A stretch of DNA of 64,000 bases from Bugula neritina (lineage: Eukaryota; Animalia; Bryozoa). A model generated the notes under the pieces. The model was not told where the DNA came from, ran no database searches, and saw nothing but the letters and a program-made list of their open reading frames with translations. Both the position numbers and the translations under genes were made by a program. The stretch is from the NCBI GenBank assembly GCA_964035545.1, contig OZ037768.1:13401675-13465674 (forward strand), given 5' to 3'. This document shows positions 3,101 through 47,600 of the stretch, one piece after another (position 1 is the stretch's first letter; every line of letters begins with the position of its first letter).

Positions 3101-6100
3101 TGTATAACTACATATAACACAATAAATCTTTCAGTACTTCTCAATAAAAACATTTTTAAATATTATTTTATTTGTGACTAAAATGACACATTGTGATTAT
3201 TGAGGTAGTAGACAAAATGTTATACATACTTTTATTGTAAACTTAGTTGCAATGTTTTCTCTGTCAACTAAAAGGTGTTTGCTGAAAGCTTTATCAAAAT
3301 AACTGACACAAAAACCACAGCAGCTTTTAGTGCAGTTCTCAGACAAGCTGTAAGTTCTTCCAGTTTAAACATAATATAGCATGAGCTATTTAAGCATTTG
3401 TCTTTCTGTTTAATAACATAATTATAAACAATTGCTAGATATTCAAGTGATTTAAGTTTAACATAACTATTTACGTGGCAGAGTTTTTAGGTTTTATGTT
3501 ATTAAACTCTGATCAGGAGTTTTTCTTGTTTGTCGGTATATACCTCAACTATATCAGCAATTTTCATCCAGTAAAGTATTTTTGAAGAGTTAAATAAGGT
3601 TTACCAACCAACTGCACTGCCTATATATATAATAAATGTGTGTGTGTATGTATATGTATATATGTATATATATATATATATGTATGTATATATATATATA
3701 TGTATATGTATATATGTATATATGTATATATATATGTATATATATACATATATATATACATATATGTATATGTATATATATGTAGGACCATGGTTTATTA
3801 GTAGAAAGGCGCCAAAGTTTCACTAACAAAAATAACTTCTATTATATTTTACAACTGTTTATTTGATTCTATTGTTACTGTGCTACTGAGCCCCTTACAT
3901 TATTGTTTTTAGATGCTAAACTAATAAGTAGCTTTCTTTTAGATTATAGTTTAGTATAAAATACAATACAGATTAGTTACAGATTGGCATATTAATTCAA
4001 AACAATCAAACACCAAATCAATTTAAGATGACTTTGCAATTTAGTTGATAACTAGTGAAACAAAAGATATGCAGAAGGACTGATCTTATCTTAGTTTTAA
4101 AGCCGCAGTGTGTATGTTTAGCATTGAACACATAGAAATGAATACAGAAAACATTAGCTGTAGATAGTACGGTTGGTAAGATATCATTGTATTGCTGGAA
4201 TATAGTTTTGACTAATTGTATCTAAATTTTATTTTGTTAACAAAATTTTGTTTCACTTGTGTTCAGCAGAAACTTTAAATAATAAAAAATAACTTCTATT
4301 TTATTAACATTTACAGGAAGATTGACTTTTGCAAAAAAAACAATTCTTATGCTTTATGAAACTAAAGGCCTTCATATTACTTGGAGCAGAATTATGGTCA
4401 TTTTTTTAGTTTAATTGAGTATTGCAGTAGAATGTGTCACAAAATTGATAAAAATTGACAACTGAATGTTGCTACTGTTAGTTATTATTATATACATATA
4501 GCACTTTTATTGTTATAGGAAACAGTTTACTAGTCAATCATACACATAAAGTCATATGCTGCCTAAGATGTAAATGATTTAGTTGAATTTTGGGCTATGA
4601 AAAAATTTCATGATCCTCATTATTACACATTTAGCAAAATATTCTCCCAGGATGTATAATAAAATACACTATTAAAATAATGATAGATATCTAGAAGCTC
4701 AAGTATTGGAAAGCTTGTCACATAGATTAATTCTATCAGTAATTAATAGAACAAACGTACCTGGTTATCGTGATGTTATTTAGACTGGAAGAATACTGTT
4801 GAATAACATCAAGTGTCTTGTCCATTATGCTATCCTTGACTACTAGAGCTACTGTAAGGTTTTTCAACACACTTAGTATGTGAATCTATAAAAATTCAAA
4901 CAATATAATGTTTAAAAGAAAAATTATTTATTTAGTCTTGTATTAATAAAATGAGAATGCTACAAAAGAAAGTAACAAAAACACAAAATGAGATTCTTTG
5001 GAGACAGCAGGTATTGTGTGTACCTATAAACAGGTAAACGGATTAGGGAGAGTAGCATAGGGACCTAAAGAATAAGGAGGAGATAAAATATTACTAGAAG
5101 GAATAGAATATATTTTATATTTCAATGAAAATATATTGGAGCTTGTGCCAATATTCTACAAGTGAAGGAGTTCGTATGTCTATTCACTAGTGAGTACAGC
5201 TACGGCAGAAGGGGAGACAAATAGTGAGAGTAATGGAAGAAGAAAGGTATTAGAAAAGAATGCCTCAAATCTTATATGATAAGGAGGCAATAGCATGGGT
5301 GAAAAGAAAGATACACTGTCGCATGCATAGACCAAGGAAATAAGCTTGTGGTAAAAGGAAATGAAATGAGCAGATGAACATTTGATTATACAATATACAA
5401 TAAAACCAGTACTAAAAGGGTCAGTTAGAGATACAGTGAATTAGGACAGAAATACTGTGAAAAACAGAAAAGAACAGCAGTTATCAACAACCGGTGTACA
5501 CAACAGACCTTGAAAAGAGGGCAACCAGAAAGAGGGTGGACAACATGCATAGGGATATGAACAGTATTATGCTGACAGCTAGTGGGAACCTCACAGCTAA
5601 TGGAAGATGTAAAAGAGACCACTTGAAAGATTCCAAAGGTAAAGAGTTCAAAAGTTGCAAGTGACTAAAGGATTTGGAACTGTATTCTGAAGAGTGGAAT
5701 ATCTACGATAAGACTGTGCAGATAATGGGATGCCATTCAACATAACAAATAATATAATAGCATGCTGAGATAGAGATTGACTTTTTGCCCTTTTAGATAA
5801 GCTACACTACACAATGCTGCACAGTGAAATACAGAATAATATAATCAGTAGCAGCTATTATGCTGATTTATCCATATAAGTAGGTATGCAGTGTATGGAA
5901 ACATATGTATGTAGGTATGTGAAAACAATCAAGTTTACTAGTTGGCAGAAATTTCACTAAAAAACAAAACTAAATAATATAACATAACCTCTTCGGTGTC
6001 ATGTCTCATATTTGGTTGCTGAGTTATGTTTCTCAGCAAGTCCTTCTGGGCATAGATTGAGGGTAGATTAACTGATACGACATTCATATCTGACACATCT

Positions 6101-38600: not shown

Positions 38601-41600
38601 TAGCCTTGATAGACCTTTAGCTCACCAACAACTCTTACTAGCACTTTAGTTATAATAGTATGTAGTTATAGCAGTGTATAGTTATAATAGTATGTAGTTA
38701 TAACAGTATGTAGTTTGGTGACTGCTGAATGAGTCAAATGCTAATAAATAACTACTTGGTTATGATTAGCCTATTTACATACATATCTACACTTGGTAAT
38801 TCTTCCACTCCCTGTCCTGTCATACTTTGCTCCTGTGATACTGTTATGTACCACAGGCTAGTCCAACAGGTTAGTCCAACAGGTTAGTCCAACAGGCTAG
38901 TCCAACAGGCTAGTCCAACAGGCTAGTCCAACAGGCTAGTCCAACAGGCTAGTCCAACAGGCTAGTCCAACAGGCTAGTCGGGCTCTGTATTCCCTATAC
39001 AAGAGTCAGTTGCTTGGAGGGAACCAGAAAAGCTTCTACTAAACTTGTGTTCTTCAGAACATGTTTACCATGAAAATATAGCCACGGAGCCTTTTTGTAC
39101 TTATGAAACTCATACAATATATTTTACAGTTATGTGTACATCCCTGTGCTGCCGGCAGCGTTGGTGGAGGTGCTGAACACGCCCACGCCTTTCATTGCCG
39201 GAGTCCACTCAGCAGTGAGGAACCAGACTCTAGAGCTGCTAGATGTGATCATAGTGGACTGTGACAGTGGCTGTGTAATCATACCGGAGTGTGTGCACAT
39301 ACCCAGTATGCCTGAGCACATGAACACTAGGCTACTCAATGACCTTAGCTCAGTAAGTAACCACCTCTCCTTACTCACTCAGTCTTGTGACAGCACACCA
39401 TGACATCACCTGTAACTACCTGCAGTAATGACTAGCCAAATGATCGCTTATCCTTTCTGTAAGAGTGGAGAGTTCAACTACTGCCTTCAGCCGCTGCCCA
39501 ATTGTTGCTGATTCTTTATACAGATTTATTGTACTCCAGTCAGCAAACTTACTTTAATAAGTCTTATGTGTGAATAAGACAATAAGTTGCTAAGATTAAA
39601 ATGCTCAACCCTGGGTGTTAACTGTTGTGTTTTAATGTGTTAAGAGTAAAGACACTTTGCCTAATTCTGGAAGTTCGTAGTGGAAGAGTGGAGATTCCTC
39701 ACGACACCCACTCAGTCATGTGATCCCACCTGCAGGTTCATTCATCCAAGTGTTACAGCCTACTAACACAGCATTATAACTACCTCTATTATAAGTTTAT
39801 AGTCACCATTCCTTTATGACCATCTCCATTATACCAGGAATAATTCTCCACAGTATAATTTATGTGTGTAATACAATGATAGGTTAGCTGTTATCTGACA
39901 AGGTGGGAATAAAGCTCAGTGACTACACCTGCTGCAGCATTCACTTTGATTACGTACTTGCCCATTGCAGTTGATGAGTTTTAGATTTATTTTGTAATAT
40001 GCTTGCTGTAAGATATAGAAAAGGTATTTGGCCAAACTTATAGCTACAGCTTACTACCAGTGTTGATTCCATTGACCTGTATTACAGTATGCCTCATGTA
40101 GGCTTATACCACATTACTATGATGGCTTACTATCTCTGGCTTTCCATAAGATATAGTAGTTAGTGGGCGTAGATTTGGTGTGCTAAAAGTTTAAGTTGTG
40201 ATTTAGGTGCTCAACCCTGACTTGTCGCATGCTGATTTCGCCTTTCCTAAAGATGTTAGCAAGACGTCTAACCTGGAGAGGCTAGACAAGGAGATTAGGG
40301 CTGTGTTTATCAGGTTCTTTGCTGAGCTGTTCAGTGGCTACAGAGCGTGTCTGCAGATTGTGAGAATTCACTCTCCCCCAGTCATCCAGTTCCACAAGGT
40401 GGGTGGTCTCTTGTATAATGAGAGTGTAGCCTATACTCTACTAGTCTGCATTACTTTACCTGTATATACAGTACTTACTGTATATATGGTAAATGTACTT
40501 ACTGTATATACAGCATATATAGTAAGTACTGTGTGTGCTGTAAATGTGGTGTATGCTGTATATACAGTACTTACTATATATGCTGTATGCACTGTAAGTA
40601 CTGTATGTACTATAAGTACTGTTTGTAAGTAAATATGGTGTGTGCTGTATGTACTGTAAGACCTGTATGTGCTGTAAGAGATTTGCCTCAGTAGGAATGT
40701 TCTGTTGCTCCACAGTATTTATACTAGTGACATATGATTGTAAGTACCGTTATATAAGTCTACCACTTGCAAATCTAATTTAAGCTATAGATGGTTGGGA
40801 GTCAAAATATTGTTACAATTTTGTTTTCCAGCAAAAACATCTTTTAGACTTTTAGCCAGGCATGTGTTGCCAATAATTGGTTTTTCACAGAGCTTGGTTT
40901 CTATATAACATTTCTATTTTGGTTGCCTTGATTATTACTAAATCATCTAAATAGGCAAAACCTAATATAGCATCTATAATAAATGACTGCAGTTATGTTT
41001 TATAATACGAAAGTTTCATTTCATATGATAGAAGTGTTTTGGCAATGCTGTAAAGCTTAATTTATGTATACTGGTGAGTTATTGCATAGTTAATCAAAGT
41101 GAATGTTCTTACATTTCTATATACAAGAAAGGTTTATAGAGCTGATCATAGCTAAACTGACTCTAAAATTTAGAGGTAGGTGCAATAATGGAGATTAGAA
41201 ATGTAGCAAAAAAGTTATGTTATGCCCAAACCAAAATTTATTTAGAAAATTTAATAACTTGGCTATTAAAATCTCTCCACTACTGTACCTAAATGAACAT
41301 TCAGTAGCTATAGCTAGCTGATTGTTGTTATTCTTGAATGAAATAATACAGGAAATATTATGCTCCTACTACAAGTTGTGTATAAATTGTAGCTTTTGTT
41401 TCCTGACTCATGCCTATCTTTTGTATCATCACGTTCAATCACCAACAGCTGTTTGGGCATTTGTTCACCATATTGTGCAAGGTTAGGGGTGTCTTACTAC
41501 TGTTTGTGTTTAACTTATTCAATTTAATTTGTTTTTATTTTTGCCTGTAAAGCTGTTGGGTGTATGGCGGTAGGATGTTTTATATTGGGTATTGCTGGCC

Positions 41601-44600
41601 TACATATTTTATTAGTAAGAGATTATGCAGGTTTGGAATTCCTTAATCAATACAACAGCAGTGGGTTGATGATAGCAGCAGTTGCAGCCTCTGTATGCCA
41701 ATTGTTGATTGACATTACAAGGCAGATCTGTGATGGGTGAACGTTTTGTATGAGTGTTGAATTTGTCTTGCTTATGTCAGAGTAACGTTGGTTATTATTC
41801 TCTTTTTCACAATCCTTCACTTTGATATCTTCAACTGTTCTAGAATATAGTGAATTGTACTCAATTAATTGTAGAAATCATATTCCAAAATCTACTCAAA
41901 ATTAACTAAAGTTTATAATAAAATGCCACGTTTAAATGTCAGCTTTGTTTTTATATTGAATTTTTCAGTTGTTTTCCATGTAGTTTTGTAGATAGAGGGG
42001 ACAATTCCTGTCATTCCTAGTAATGCATGATAATTAAGAAATTACTACCATATAAGTGAATGTAATTATAATGTCACCTATTTCTAATGCAGTCATTGCT
42101 GGAGTTGATTAATGTGGATTCGTTGTAGGCCAAGTTCTTGGGGATTCGAAACCTGGTCGAGTGCGAGTTTTCTAAAAAGTTGCTGGATAGCATGTGCTTT
42201 GCGTCTTTTGTACAATACAGAGGCCTGCCGTTTCGAGTTTGTGATATTTTTGATGAGGTAAGTATTAGTGCTTTTTTTCCCTTTATAAACAAAATGTTCG
42301 GATGAGATAGTGTATAATGCAATATATCCTTAAAATTTATTATGGGAGGTGCATTGTGAATTATACTGTCTTGTCAGTTAACTACTAGTCAACATGTAGC
42401 AATGCTATAGCAGTCAGTTCAGTACACAGTGTAAAACAACATTGTTTTGTTAATTTTAAAAATAGTTTTGTTTTCATTTACTTAAATTAAACAGAATGTG
42501 TAAATATTCTAGGTGTTCACCTCTTTGTCAACTTCGTTCCACGAAGAGCAGGTTGACCCTTCAATGGTGCTGCAACATATAAAAGAGATAGCTGATACCC
42601 TCTACCTGAATGTAAGTGTTGAGGGTTATAACTACTAGGTCAACATAATCTTAAGATTCTAGAAATGCAAGCATTTATCACCTGAAAGTGTAACAGATTA
42701 GGCTAAAAGCAATACCTTTTCAGTACTCAAATACATTACATGGGTAATGTGTTTAAAACTTATATTAAGGTCTTTTTTAATTATCTTTTCATAAAACTAC
42801 TTTCACAAAATAGTTTGTTGTAAAAATTATTGAGGGTTGTCTTCTTTTCCAGATATTTGAATTCGAATACTTGCTGGTGCTAAATATATTTTAATTTGTA
42901 CAACAATCAATAACAATAAGTTGTAATCTTTCATGTAGAAGCATTGCAAAATTAAAACTTCAATATGCGCTTTGGCAAGTTGAATTTTTTTTAACCTAGC
43001 ACAGTGTTTGATGCTTTTGAATTCTGTATGAATAGTAGTTTACTTGTGCCTGCAGTAGGGCTAATTCAAGCGCATTCAATTCTCTTATAGTTGAGCATGA
43101 CTTAGACACAATTTGGGATGTGTCACATAGCTATGCTGAAAGAAATAATATTGTTCTTTTTTTAGGTTTTAAGCATTTTTCTTCACCTTATAAAGAGGAA
43201 ATGTTTTATGGACCTGTTGTTTTAGAACTGAGTACCTAAAATTGAGCTTTAAGTTACTTTTTTGGTTAAAACTACAGTTACTCACCTTATATAAATCAAC
43301 TTAATTTATTAAAGAAGAAATCTAGAATCACTTTTAATGTGTATAAGATAATGTTGTGGCAAAGACATAAAGTTCATGCTATGCAGAACTCGCTTTTGAG
43401 AACATAAGATAATCATAACATTGTAAATGCTTTGAAAGTATGTAATAGCTAACGAATGCAAGAGCACTTCTGTTTGTTTTGCAGGAAAATCCAGCTGCGA
43501 CAATAACTGCGTTGAGTACCCAGCAATATATAGAGAAGATACCGAAACCGACGGCCGGTGCATTCTCCCGTATACATCTCCCCAAGTTCCCAATCATAGA
43601 CTGGTTGCATGTGCAAGAGATAGTGGACAAGGGCCAGAGCAAAAGAGATAGTTGTCAGAAGTTGGTGTTACATTTCTAGCATTTTGAATAAAATCTGGTG
43701 GTTGTTACTCTAGCATACTGCAGTCCATTTTTAGAGTTTCAATCTCTTTTTTCAGTTAGATTTTGATCATTAAACTGAGGATAAATATATTGGGGTCATT
43801 TTACCTAATTTTACACTGGCAAATTAGAGCTAAAATCAAAATTGGTTCAAAATCTATGAAAATATAACACTTGGTAGTGTTTTGCTCAGCTAGATTTTGA
43901 TAAATGTATTTTAATTTAAGTTGTTTGAGTTCATTGATTTTACTTAATAGTTGTATGTAAATGCAGGTTTTACCAAATTACTGATTGGTACTAGTTTATG
44001 TGGTGGGATGTTGTATCTGTTTCAGACATACACAACATTTACGAACTCCAACACCACGGATAGTGCAGATGGGCATGTTATACAATAAGCAGACAAATTT
44101 TTATGCTAATCAAAATAGGAGATTGGAGGTGCTACATAACTGTGTTAAATTTATTTTTGAAAACAAGATATCAGATGCTAGAAAAGTAAGTGCTTCTGAG
44201 TTCCATAGTTTTGAATTAATTTGCTAATATGTATTATTTAAAGTTTCTCATGTTTATTATAATATAGATAAAGGATTGCTTTGCTGGGTTTTTCAATTTT
44301 TATTGATATTAAATATTTGAGCATGCATAAACATGCATGAAAAATTAACACCCAAAAGATTTTTTAACATGCAGGAAAAAATAAATTCAACATGCAGAAA
44401 AAGTTGAACAAATCACAATTTTCAATTACTTTTGGTACATGCAGAGGAACTCTGTACAGTAGTAACTGGTATGAGCACTAGACTGTCACATCTATACACT
44501 GTGTGGGTTTTATCAGTCTAGCGTCGTTTAGAGGAGCTTTTTTTGCCTTTTCGGCTCCTCCTCCTCCTGCGCTTAACTTTTCTTGTGCGCTTGGATCCTC

Positions 44601-47600
44601 TGCGAGATCGTGATTTCCTCGATCTCCTGCGCTTGCTTCTCCTTCGGCTGCTTCTCCTCGATCTCCTTCTGGATCTCCTTCTGCCTTTTCGGCCCCTAAA
44701 TTTAGTGAATATTGTCGTTATTATCCACAGTTTGTTTAGTTTATACGGTGAACATGATGTGTAGTGAATGTAGCGCATTTAGCAATGACCAATGATTAGG
44801 TTCTCACCTTCTGGACCTGCTGCGCTTCTTGCTACCAGATCTCCTTCGTCTGCGTCGCCTGCGTCGGCTCATCTCCTGACTGTCGTCATGCATGGCAACA
44901 CGTTTCCTACTTGGTCCTCTTGCTGCTTTGCTAGGGGACCTTCGTCGGCGAGACATAACTTCAGTGGAGGCTGTGCTCACCATGGCATCTTGAAAAAATT
45001 CAACGATTTATTTAAAAATAGTCATTTTTTAAATAAAAATAAAATTATTAAAATATTTTTTCTTGATTAATTTTAAAAATGAATTTAATTTTACTTACCA
45101 GTCTCCTCCACTCTTGATCGAGATCTTGATTTGGCACCCATGTTGTCAGTTTTAAACTGAAGAACTTGTGGTCTATTCGCCTCCTTTTATACATGACGAT
45201 TTGTCTTTGATTGGCCAAAAAACAATGGCGTTTGTCTATTTTACATCGATTGTCTTTTACTGGTTGATTTTTTAACATTTGTTTTGAGGCTATTGGCTGT
45301 TACTAGTTGTGAAGCCATTTTATATTTTTTCTCAAAAAATACTCAAATAGTTATCACATCACCAATTCCGTTAATTCTCTAAAAGCAGAAAATGGCTTCA
45401 TTGTGTTGAAAAAGAATTTTACATTTTCTAAAAAATAATATTATGTATTTTATAATTTTTTTTCTCTTTTGCATTTTAAAGGTTTTTTTTAAGCATGTAA
45501 TGCTTAAAAAACTTTGGTGAAGAGCTACACTCGCAGTTGATCAAACTAATAACACTGAATAAAATTTCAATTTCAATTATTTTTGTAATATAAAACATTT
45601 TTTGTGCACTTGGTGATAATATTATGTTAAATTGAAGTCAAAGCAACCATTTATAAAAGTTGCCCTTTTACTATTTACAATTTTTCATGAAACATGATAA
45701 TACAAGTTTGCATCTGTAATGCCATATATATATCATTTGGTTGTCTTGCTGGAAAACCCAGAAACACAAGCTGTCCCAATAGTGTAAAAAATTGGAAATT
45801 TGAAAAATTGAGCATTACTTGTTCACAATAATTGTCGTAAAAATTTTTTTTCAAGAATTTAAAAGAAGACAATCTTTAAATTTATTATCTAAATATTTTA
45901 TTTTCTTCAAGACACTATTACATAGCTTTGTTACCTCTGTAGATATATCCCGCTGTTGTTCGTGCTCTCAAGAACAAAACAGCCCGTCATGCTCTCACTG
46001 AAGATTTGAAAAGACACGCAGCCCAAAACAAGTGCAATTTAGATCATCAGCAGTTTCTTATTGTGGTGAAACTGTTTAATTCTCTTCTTCAAAATGAGTC
46101 GCCACTAGATGAGAATGGCATTGCAGCTCAGTTACTTCCACTTGGTGACACGTTCTGTAGGGTGAGTGTCACATGTTTACTCAGCCTCACTAGTAGTTGA
46201 GAAGGGCCGTGTAGTTTATGAGATGTCAGTGCTAGCAGTTTATATCATAGTCCTAGTTACACATTACAGTTCTGATGTTAGCCTGCTCTGTGATATACTT
46301 ATATATAGGCCATGAAACAACTTCACTATTGAGGGGAGGGGTACATTTCATTTCACACTGATGGACAGTTTATTTATAAACCTTGTTTAGTATTATAAGT
46401 GATCATTATTACATGGTTCCCAGTTTAAGTCATGAATAAATTACAGAAACTAACATTTATCATATATGATGATGTTTAACTGTTACTCAAGAAAAGACCC
46501 TGTAAGCTACTGCAGTTGACTGGTGGTTATATCGTGGCTGGGTTGTGTTGTAGCGACTCTCTCCTGGTGTGATACAGTTTGCATACACTTGCATACAAGA
46601 ACATGCTGTGTGGAGTAACCAGCAGTTTTGGGAGGCTACTTTCTATGAGGAAGTCCAGAAGCAGATTAAAAACCTCTACCAGTCCATGTACAAGGAAAAG
46701 AGTGTACAGTCTAGTCAAGTATGGCTCTTCAGTATTTCTGCATGCATGTTGTCAGTCATTTGTTTTTATAAAAAAATTCTTTTTTTATTCACATTATTTA
46801 TTTATTTATTTAGTGTATGATTTGGTAGTTTTTCATTGTGGTGTATAACTCACAGGTTCCTGTGAATTCCAATGGTAGTAATGATCACCGGCACTCAGAT
46901 CTAGCATTCAAGAAAACTGAGTCACTTGTTACAGAAGATGTCAGCTGTTTGGAGATTGCTGCTGAAGAGGTGAATGAAATGTAGTCGTGTTGGTTGTCAG
47001 CTTTAGTAATGATGGTTTAGATTCATTTTTGTTATAATTATTTAGCAGCCATTAGGAGGTAGAGTAGAACAAATAACCTGCTAGCACTACTGCTGCTGCA
47101 ACAAGTATTTATGCTTTGCAAAAAGACATTCTAAAATATGGAACTGTGAAATGGTTTTCAAGTATTATTTGACCATAGATAATTAATTATTTGCGCTCCT
47201 ACAATATAATGGATTTTATAATTAACCTTATTCAGAGTAGATTCTGTGAAGCCAGGCTTTCTAATGGTGTAACTAGTATTTTATGATAAAATGAAGTTGG
47301 TTAATATAAATGTGTTTACAATTGATGACTTCATTGTTACCTAGTATGTCATAAAAGCCTTAGGTCCACAATATGATTAACATGCTGTCAGCTTTACTAT
47401 CACTTCTGATATAAATTTGTTGTTAAAATATTTAGTTGCGGAAAGTCAAGTACACCAAGAAAGAGGAGGTTGGGAGTCTCAGCACTCAGGAGGAAGGAAT
47501 CGTCTACTCACAAGCTTTGCACTTCTGTAACCGTATGGTTTATCTTAAAGTACCACTCGATACAAATCGGGGAATGCCTTTCTTACCTCGTGGAGAGGAG

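Follow-up and report, generated by a model that had tools for sequence, protein, structure and literature searches.

Protamines, among them salmine and clupeine of fish, are small proteins with at least ~30 mol% Arg and no globular domain or histone fold; they are not one homologous family, and fast evolution is typical of sperm nuclear proteins. The protamine of cuttlefish and protamine 2 of mouse are known as precursors with an N-terminal leader. Two other described systems come close in composition: the PL (protamine-like) proteins of bivalves and tunicates (PL-I to PL-IV), which derive from histone H1, and the RS domains of SR and SR-related proteins, which are defined by an RNA-recognition motif (RRM) together with consecutive RS/SR repeats. 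Bryozoan sperm have condensed, thread-like nuclei, and the literature searched contained no paper on their nuclear basic proteins. Here we analyse a gene in a 64,000-nt stretch of the genome of the bryozoan Bugula neritina (contig OZ037768.1, positions 13,401,675–13,465,674; hereafter the window), which an initial annotation had proposed to be protamine-like. We conclude that it is a complete, separate, spliced protein-coding gene on the strand opposite to the SBF intron that houses it.

A spliced gene antisense to its SBF host

The gene lies on the minus strand of window positions 44186–45942, between a plus-strand host exon that ends at 44185 and the next, which begins at 45943. It has three exons, both introns are GT..AG, and the pieces translate free of stops. 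Neighbouring host exons match DENN (E 1.7e-13), SBF2 (E 1.3e-23) and myotubularin-related phosphatase (E 6.8e-16) in Pfam, and we therefore assign the host to SBF1/SBF2 (MTMR5/13), a gene required for spermatogenesis in mice. RNA evidence came mainly from runs X1 (100 million letters) and X2 (260 million letters), both from one public, coded sample that is ~5% diverged from the window and therefore represents another strain or a sibling species. The runs were compared as contigs, from which strand, transcript ends and level are not readable and in which depth is a poor measure. A paper on RNA-seq of B. neritina colonies (PMC5009525) offered no link to the coded runs. The nested gene and its flanking host exons are laid out as follows.

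44026–44185, plus strand: host SBF/MTMR13 exon 5′ of the intron; joint 44185>45943 (GT..AG) in X1 and X2 contigs
45943–46161, plus strand: host SBF/MTMR13 exon 3′ of the intron, with the SBF2 domain (PF12335); joint seen in RNA
45141–45099, minus strand: coding part of exon 1, with the ATG at 45141; 14 codons plus 1 nt, phase 1
45098–44989, minus strand: intron 1, 110 nt, GT..AG
44988–44808, minus strand: exon 2, encoding the remainder of the head, with its conserved motif, acidic patch and conserved Met, and the first part of the tail, R9-SGSKKR
44807–44696, minus strand: intron 2, 112 nt, GT..AG, phase 2
44695–44518, minus strand: coding part of exon 3, 58 codons plus the stop TAG at 44520–44518; Arg/Ser/Lys tail
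44299–44517, minus strand: 3′ untranslated region (UTR), with AATAAA at 44304–44299 and five UGCAUG motifs

Two joints in the X1 and X2 contigs show that both predicted minus-strand introns are removed in RNA. One is 44988>45099 (CT..AC on the plus strand), whose shorter side spans 182 letters; the other is 44694>44807, which reads CT..AC when cut one place further right and has a shorter side of 27 letters. An unspliced intron-2 contig (44668–44836) is also present in the RNA runs. The host joint and the nested joints thus occur in the same runs with opposite splice polarity, in keeping with an antisense arrangement for which the transcript ends of the nested gene are predictions. In run X3, RNA from a second study that is identical to the window, a single 162-nt contig covers 44366–44527 in the 3′ UTR and the host exons are uncovered, which favours the nested gene itself as the source of this RNA. 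Upstream, the spliced contig extends past the predicted start and reaches 45367 in X1 and 45972 in X2. The extension may reflect a merge with host pre-mRNA in the graph, or else an antisense RNA of greater length. Splicing of both introns in RNA contigs and the presence of the three-exon frame in four other genes (see below) show that the frame is more than chance.

These results bear out the layout in the initial annotation, which had placed the gene on the opposite strand within one SBF/MTMR13 intron. When we read and translated the gene exon by exon, the junctions it had given (45099/44988 and 44808/44695) proved exact and its AATAAA was found on the minus strand; spliced minus-strand RNA, the absence of which it had named as decisive against the gene, is represented by both joints. 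The window and the X1/X2 allele differ as follows, with counts that are approximate.

Nested intron 2: 12 differences in 112 nt
3′ UTR: ~16 differences in 330 nt
Exon 3: 7 differences in 178 nt
Exon 2: 4 differences in 181 nt
Host exons: 2 differences in 160 nt and 3 in 219 nt

From these rates the nested exons are more constrained than the nested intron.

The 3′ UTR of the nested gene, 228 nt long, contains five copies of UGCAUG, an Rbfox-type site, within ~120 nt (window 44322–44442, minus strand), a count unexceeded by any other 228-nt stretch of the window. All five copies are intact in the ~5% diverged X1/X2 allele, but neither the orthologues nor the paralogue described below have the motif in their 3′ UTRs. 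The two listed host exons reach a mean word depth of ~400 in X1 and ~2000 in X2, far over expectation for such a gene. Adjoining another host exon, positions 40431–40713 hold a codon-periodic tandem repeat with long Tyr/Thr/Val-rich open frames on both strands.

An Arg-rich protein with a head and a tail

Counted over the three exon pieces and the two codons split at their joints (GAT, encoding D, and AGG, encoding R), the product has 133 aa, of which 39.1% are Arg, 11.3% Lys (50.4% Arg+Lys), 21.1% Ser, 5.3% Gly and 5.3% Asp+Glu. Cys, Leu, Ile, Phe, Tyr and Trp are absent, the mass is ~16.2 kDa and the net charge +60. Arg is encoded by 21 CGN and 31 AGR codons, and Ser draws on all six of its codons. 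Tandem Repeats Finder reported only 2-copy micro-repeats of 9–15 nt in the coding part, which rules out a DNA-repeat origin of the Arg-rich frame.

Protein searches were made exon by exon. In Pfam, at E up to 10, each exon was without a match to any family, including histone folds, H1 domains, HMG boxes, RRMs and protamine families; given also the lack of Leu, Ile, Phe, Tyr and Trp, the protein has no globular fold. The recount and the Pfam result both agree with the initial annotation, which had listed 133 aa, 39% Arg, 50% Arg+Lys, no Cys and no histone fold. We found no relative of the protein among PDB sequences, no neighbour in the ESM Atlas and no element in Rfam, the histone 3′ stem-loop included, while the 599 poly-Arg stretches matched in a scan of JGI metagenomes were all unrelated. 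Word-index protein searches, with exon 3 in its stop-free 86-aa frame and with the metagenome protein P0001 (see below), yielded nothing beyond P0001.

The protein has a two-part build. Its head of 54 aa carries every acidic residue; in its tail of 79 aa, which lacks acidic residues, Arg makes up 53% and stands in blocks of 3–9 split by Ser, Gly or Lys. Across the five family genes that we identified, the head (48–63 aa) contains every acidic residue, or every one except a single residue, and ends in [DE]-x(1-2)-M, and the tail (69–79 aa, 9.3–10.3 kDa) is 53–72% Arg and 17–23% Ser with 0–1 acidic residues. The tail thus has the size and grammar of a protamine. Conserved motifs run through the protein: the N-terminus M-G-[AS]-x-SRSRSR, in orthologues and paralogue; VMSRR[RH][RK]-S-P-[SA]-K-AA in the head, in which S-P-x-K is a CDK-type site; and, from the end of the head onward, an acidic patch, then Met, then R9-SG, with the R9 block in four of the five genes. 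RS/SR dipeptides number 28 in the window protein and 24–30 per family protein, the longest alternating RS run has three repeats, and Arg blocks of 5–9 dominate.

Two features of the N-terminus were examined further. N-myristoylation of the MG start was ruled out by the PROSITE-type pattern that serves as its criterion, as the fifth position after the Gly is Arg, and one orthologue begins with MV. By eye there is no signal peptide, the N-terminus being hydrophilic and free of Leu, Ile, Phe, Tyr and Trp, and the classical secretory route is therefore closed to the product.

A two-locus family with conserved promoter elements

We searched the animal's own genome (216 Mb, 321 contigs) with exon 2, exon 3 and a five-sequence profile. 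Exactly two family loci were found, the SBF-nested gene and one paralogue on contig C9.

L002 1232–1806 (G000:C9:3971213–3971787), minus strand: C9 paralogue, with a TATAAAT box, an MGSRSRSRS start and phase-1 and phase-2 introns

The paralogue encodes 133 aa with 38.3% Arg. It has aftiphilin-like exons (Clathrin_bdg, E 3e-4, short of the Pfam cut-off) on its upstream side and a minus-strand bZIP gene on its downstream side. Among 1.84 billion representative proteins, an exon-2 profile found a single match, P0001 (E 3.7e-5). P0001 is the exon-2 open frame on ENA metagenome contigs, and the full contig (L006) carries a three-exon gene of 124 aa; its tail, SKKGG-R6-SRRGR, shows this gene to be another species' orthologue of the C9 copy. 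Some 280 nt further downstream, positions 1490–1665 of the contig hold ~9 tandem copies of a 17–18-nt unit (aactacactataaataga).

A search with the downstream host exon returned six SBF2-domain proteins with 72–93% identity, and the orthologous intron could be compared in three relatives, L010, L011 and L012; the contig of a fourth, L013, is too short on that side. In L010, whose host exon is 93% identical, the same intron measures ~1.65 kb and houses an orthologue on the minus strand (132 aa, 47% Arg). L011 (host exon 82% identical over 73 aligned codons, 80% by BLASTP) has a 132-aa orthologue in an intron of 903 nt, of which the nested unit, with its promoter and poly(A) signal, fills ~610 nt. 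L012 (host exon 83% over 72 aligned codons, 79% by BLASTP) has a plain 210-bp intron at 5776–5985 with no nested gene. The nested gene is therefore lineage-restricted, or was lost in L012. All five genes encode 124–133 aa with 38–47% Arg and no Cys, and have introns of phases 1 and 2. Outside this group, no relatives were found in Pfam, PDB, the Atlas or the 1.84 billion representative proteins.

A TATA box stands 38–50 nt before the ATG in all five genes. In the window, the elements ahead of the nested gene are these.

45222–45226, minus strand: ATTGT element, 35 nt upstream of the TATA box; invariant in the window, L010 and L011
45210–45214, minus strand: proximal CCAAT box (GCCAATCA), 23 nt upstream of the TATA box
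45184–45191, minus strand: TATA box (TATAAAAG), 50 nt upstream of the ATG
45155–45160, minus strand: initiator-like TCAGTT, the transcription start predicted from sequence

The 120 nt before the ATG have diverged among the three SBF-nested genes save for ATTGT, GCCAATCA and GTATA[AT]AAGG, and the spacing upstream of the TATA box is held at 22–23 nt for CCAAT and 35–37 nt for ATTGT. The C9-type pair has its CCAAT box inverted (GATTGGT), 27 nt from the TATA box, and its conserved blocks are the palindrome AGACAAT-N5-ATTGTCT, GATTGGT and AGTATAAA. Promoter blocks thus differ by orthologous group, the SBF-nested and the C9-type genes each keeping a set of their own, and their pattern supports a promoter directly ahead of each family gene. 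ACAAT is the core of SOX-type sites. The 19-bp palindrome is kept between species ahead of the C9-type genes (L002 ~1895–1913, L006 ~515–533) and has three sites in the 216-Mb genome versus none for a reversed control. We rejected it as a mark of a co-regulated gene set, the other two genome sites adjoining nothing recognisable.

Between species, the host exon has pS 0.73–0.99 and pN 0.06–0.14; its synonymous sites are saturated and the species are therefore deeply diverged. In the nested-gene family, every pair has saturated pS (0.70–0.84) with pN of 0.33–0.42, so that the protein is under purifying selection, while at the amino-acid level it evolves 3–6 times faster than the host exon. Of 34–42 aligned Arg-Arg columns, 19–30 differ in codon, and in 13–20 per gene pair one member uses CGN and the other AGR. 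Both the pN/pS and the codon-switch figures are rough, the alignment of low-complexity sequence being uncertain. Several proposals of the initial annotation are upheld by these comparisons: the argument from mixed Arg codons for selection at the protein level, by the switches and a pN well under the saturated pS; a promoter of its own, by the fixed element spacing in three species amid diverged bases; and a lineage-restricted, fast-evolving gene, by the pN values and by the collections searched. Where it had pointed to paralogues and to the orthologous intron in relatives, we found one paralogue, and the nested gene in two of three introns.

Function and comparison with known systems

We consider it quite possible, if short of probable, that the nested gene encodes a protamine-type sperm nuclear basic protein, which may arise from a precursor. 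At 133 aa and 39.1% Arg the product is small and Arg-rich enough for the class, and Pfam, PDB and composition point to no globular domain or histone fold. Composition, the grammar of the Arg blocks, the lack of a fold, lineage restriction and fast evolution fit best with such a protein. No sequence homology to a described protamine family was found (Pfam was blank, and P0001 was the only match among 1.84 billion proteins), which does not exclude the class because protamines are not one homologous family. We infer a nuclear or sperm location, DNA condensation, phosphorylation and processing along the following lines. The protein would be made in spermatids, where phosphorylation of Ser, and perhaps the head as well, would keep it soluble and off DNA; the head may be a leader, cut off behind the conserved Met; and the Arg-block tail would offset the negative charge of DNA phosphates and condense the thread-like nucleus of the sperm. 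A fuller version, which we regard as doubtful, is that the two-gene family is the first protamine of Bryozoa, independently evolved and made as a precursor whose head is removed behind the Met, with the SBF copy antisense to its host since before the split of the saturated lineages and possibly coupled to it in expression.

Several points weigh against a protamine. Composition alone cannot separate protamines from RS-rich nuclear proteins (the window protein has 28 RS/SR dipeptides), and a product of 133 aa and 11% Lys exceeds the usual length of a classical protamine, unless it is processed. The RNA with the splice joints comes from a coded sample with no tie to male germ cells, and colonies of the source animal are hermaphrodite, so that whole-colony RNA cannot discriminate male germ-cell expression. 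In X1 and X2 the nested-gene contigs are no deeper than the surrounding intron, by the poor measure that contig depth is. The transcription start and poly(A) site of the gene are sequence predictions.

The dipeptides would also suit a general small nuclear Arg/Ser-rich protein, a speckle or nucleolar RNA-binding protein or chaperone polycation present in many cell types and regulated by SR-protein kinase. The conserved SRSRSR N-terminus, the 24–30 RS/SR dipeptides per protein and the RNA in samples not chosen for male tissue speak for such a role, and CCAAT plus TATA promoters are common in proliferation genes too. However, the protein has no RRM or other domain, its RS alternation stops at three repeats while Arg blocks of 5–9 dominate, and one relative (L012) is without the gene at the SBF site; occurrence in a few related species and fast evolution would also be unusual for a core RNA-processing factor. 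We therefore rate this role as possible but somewhat unlikely. A polycation with another job, be it nucleic-acid packing or protection in eggs, embryos or larvae, an antimicrobial or cell-penetrating peptide, or a partner of an acidic matrix, is less likely again: the two-part build could be that of a pro-peptide and an active polycation, but there is no signal peptide and the N-terminus is hydrophilic, without Leu, Ile, Phe, Tyr or Trp.

Low-complexity sequence leaves several frames open, and the spliced contig reaches past the predicted start on its upstream side, both of which could suit a non-coding antisense or intronic transcript with an open frame that is a by-product of purine-rich, low-complexity DNA. 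This is very improbable, as the five genes, at two loci and from three or more species, share frame, start, stop region and intron phases although synonymous sites are saturated, and as motifs other than Arg (the head motif, the acidic patch and the Met) are conserved too.

A conserved, apparently unannotated family with protamine composition provides a concrete candidate for the sperm proteins of bryozoans. If it is a protamine, it would add one more independent origin to the repeated evolution of these proteins. The SBF copy also illustrates cleanly how an antisense gene can stay nested in a single intron for a long evolutionary time, and its compact, footprinted promoter makes the cis-elements directly testable. 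For annotation, the family illustrates how very Arg-rich small genes slip past gene callers and protein collections.

Set beside salmine, clupeine and other protamines, the family shares an Arg content of 39% overall and 53–72% in the tail, blocks split by Ser or Gly, a basic part free of acidic residues, the lack of a fold, fast evolution and a small TATA-driven gene. A GG-R6/7 block recalls salmine, and the head may correspond to the N-terminal leader of the cuttlefish protamine and mouse protamine 2 precursors, processing being something that we infer here. It differs from them in giving no match to the Pfam protamine families and in having 133 aa, 11% Lys, no Cys and three exons, and it is known from a gene and RNA contigs. 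The resemblance to PL proteins lies in Arg+Lys of ~50%, abundant Ser, a composition intermediate between histones and protamines, and occurrence in marine lophotrochozoans. In contrast to them, Arg is far above Lys and Pfam detects neither an H1 winged-helix domain nor any relation to H1; with the linker-histone search blank, we rejected an H1-derived PL protein. With the RS domains of SR and SR-related proteins the family has in common many RS/SR dipeptides and a strongly basic, disordered chain that is likely to be a substrate of SR-protein kinases. It departs from them in its lack of an RRM, RS alternation of at most three repeats, long pure Arg runs and lineage restriction, and as Arg runs of 3–9 prevail and there is no RRM, it is not an SR or SR-related protein by definition.

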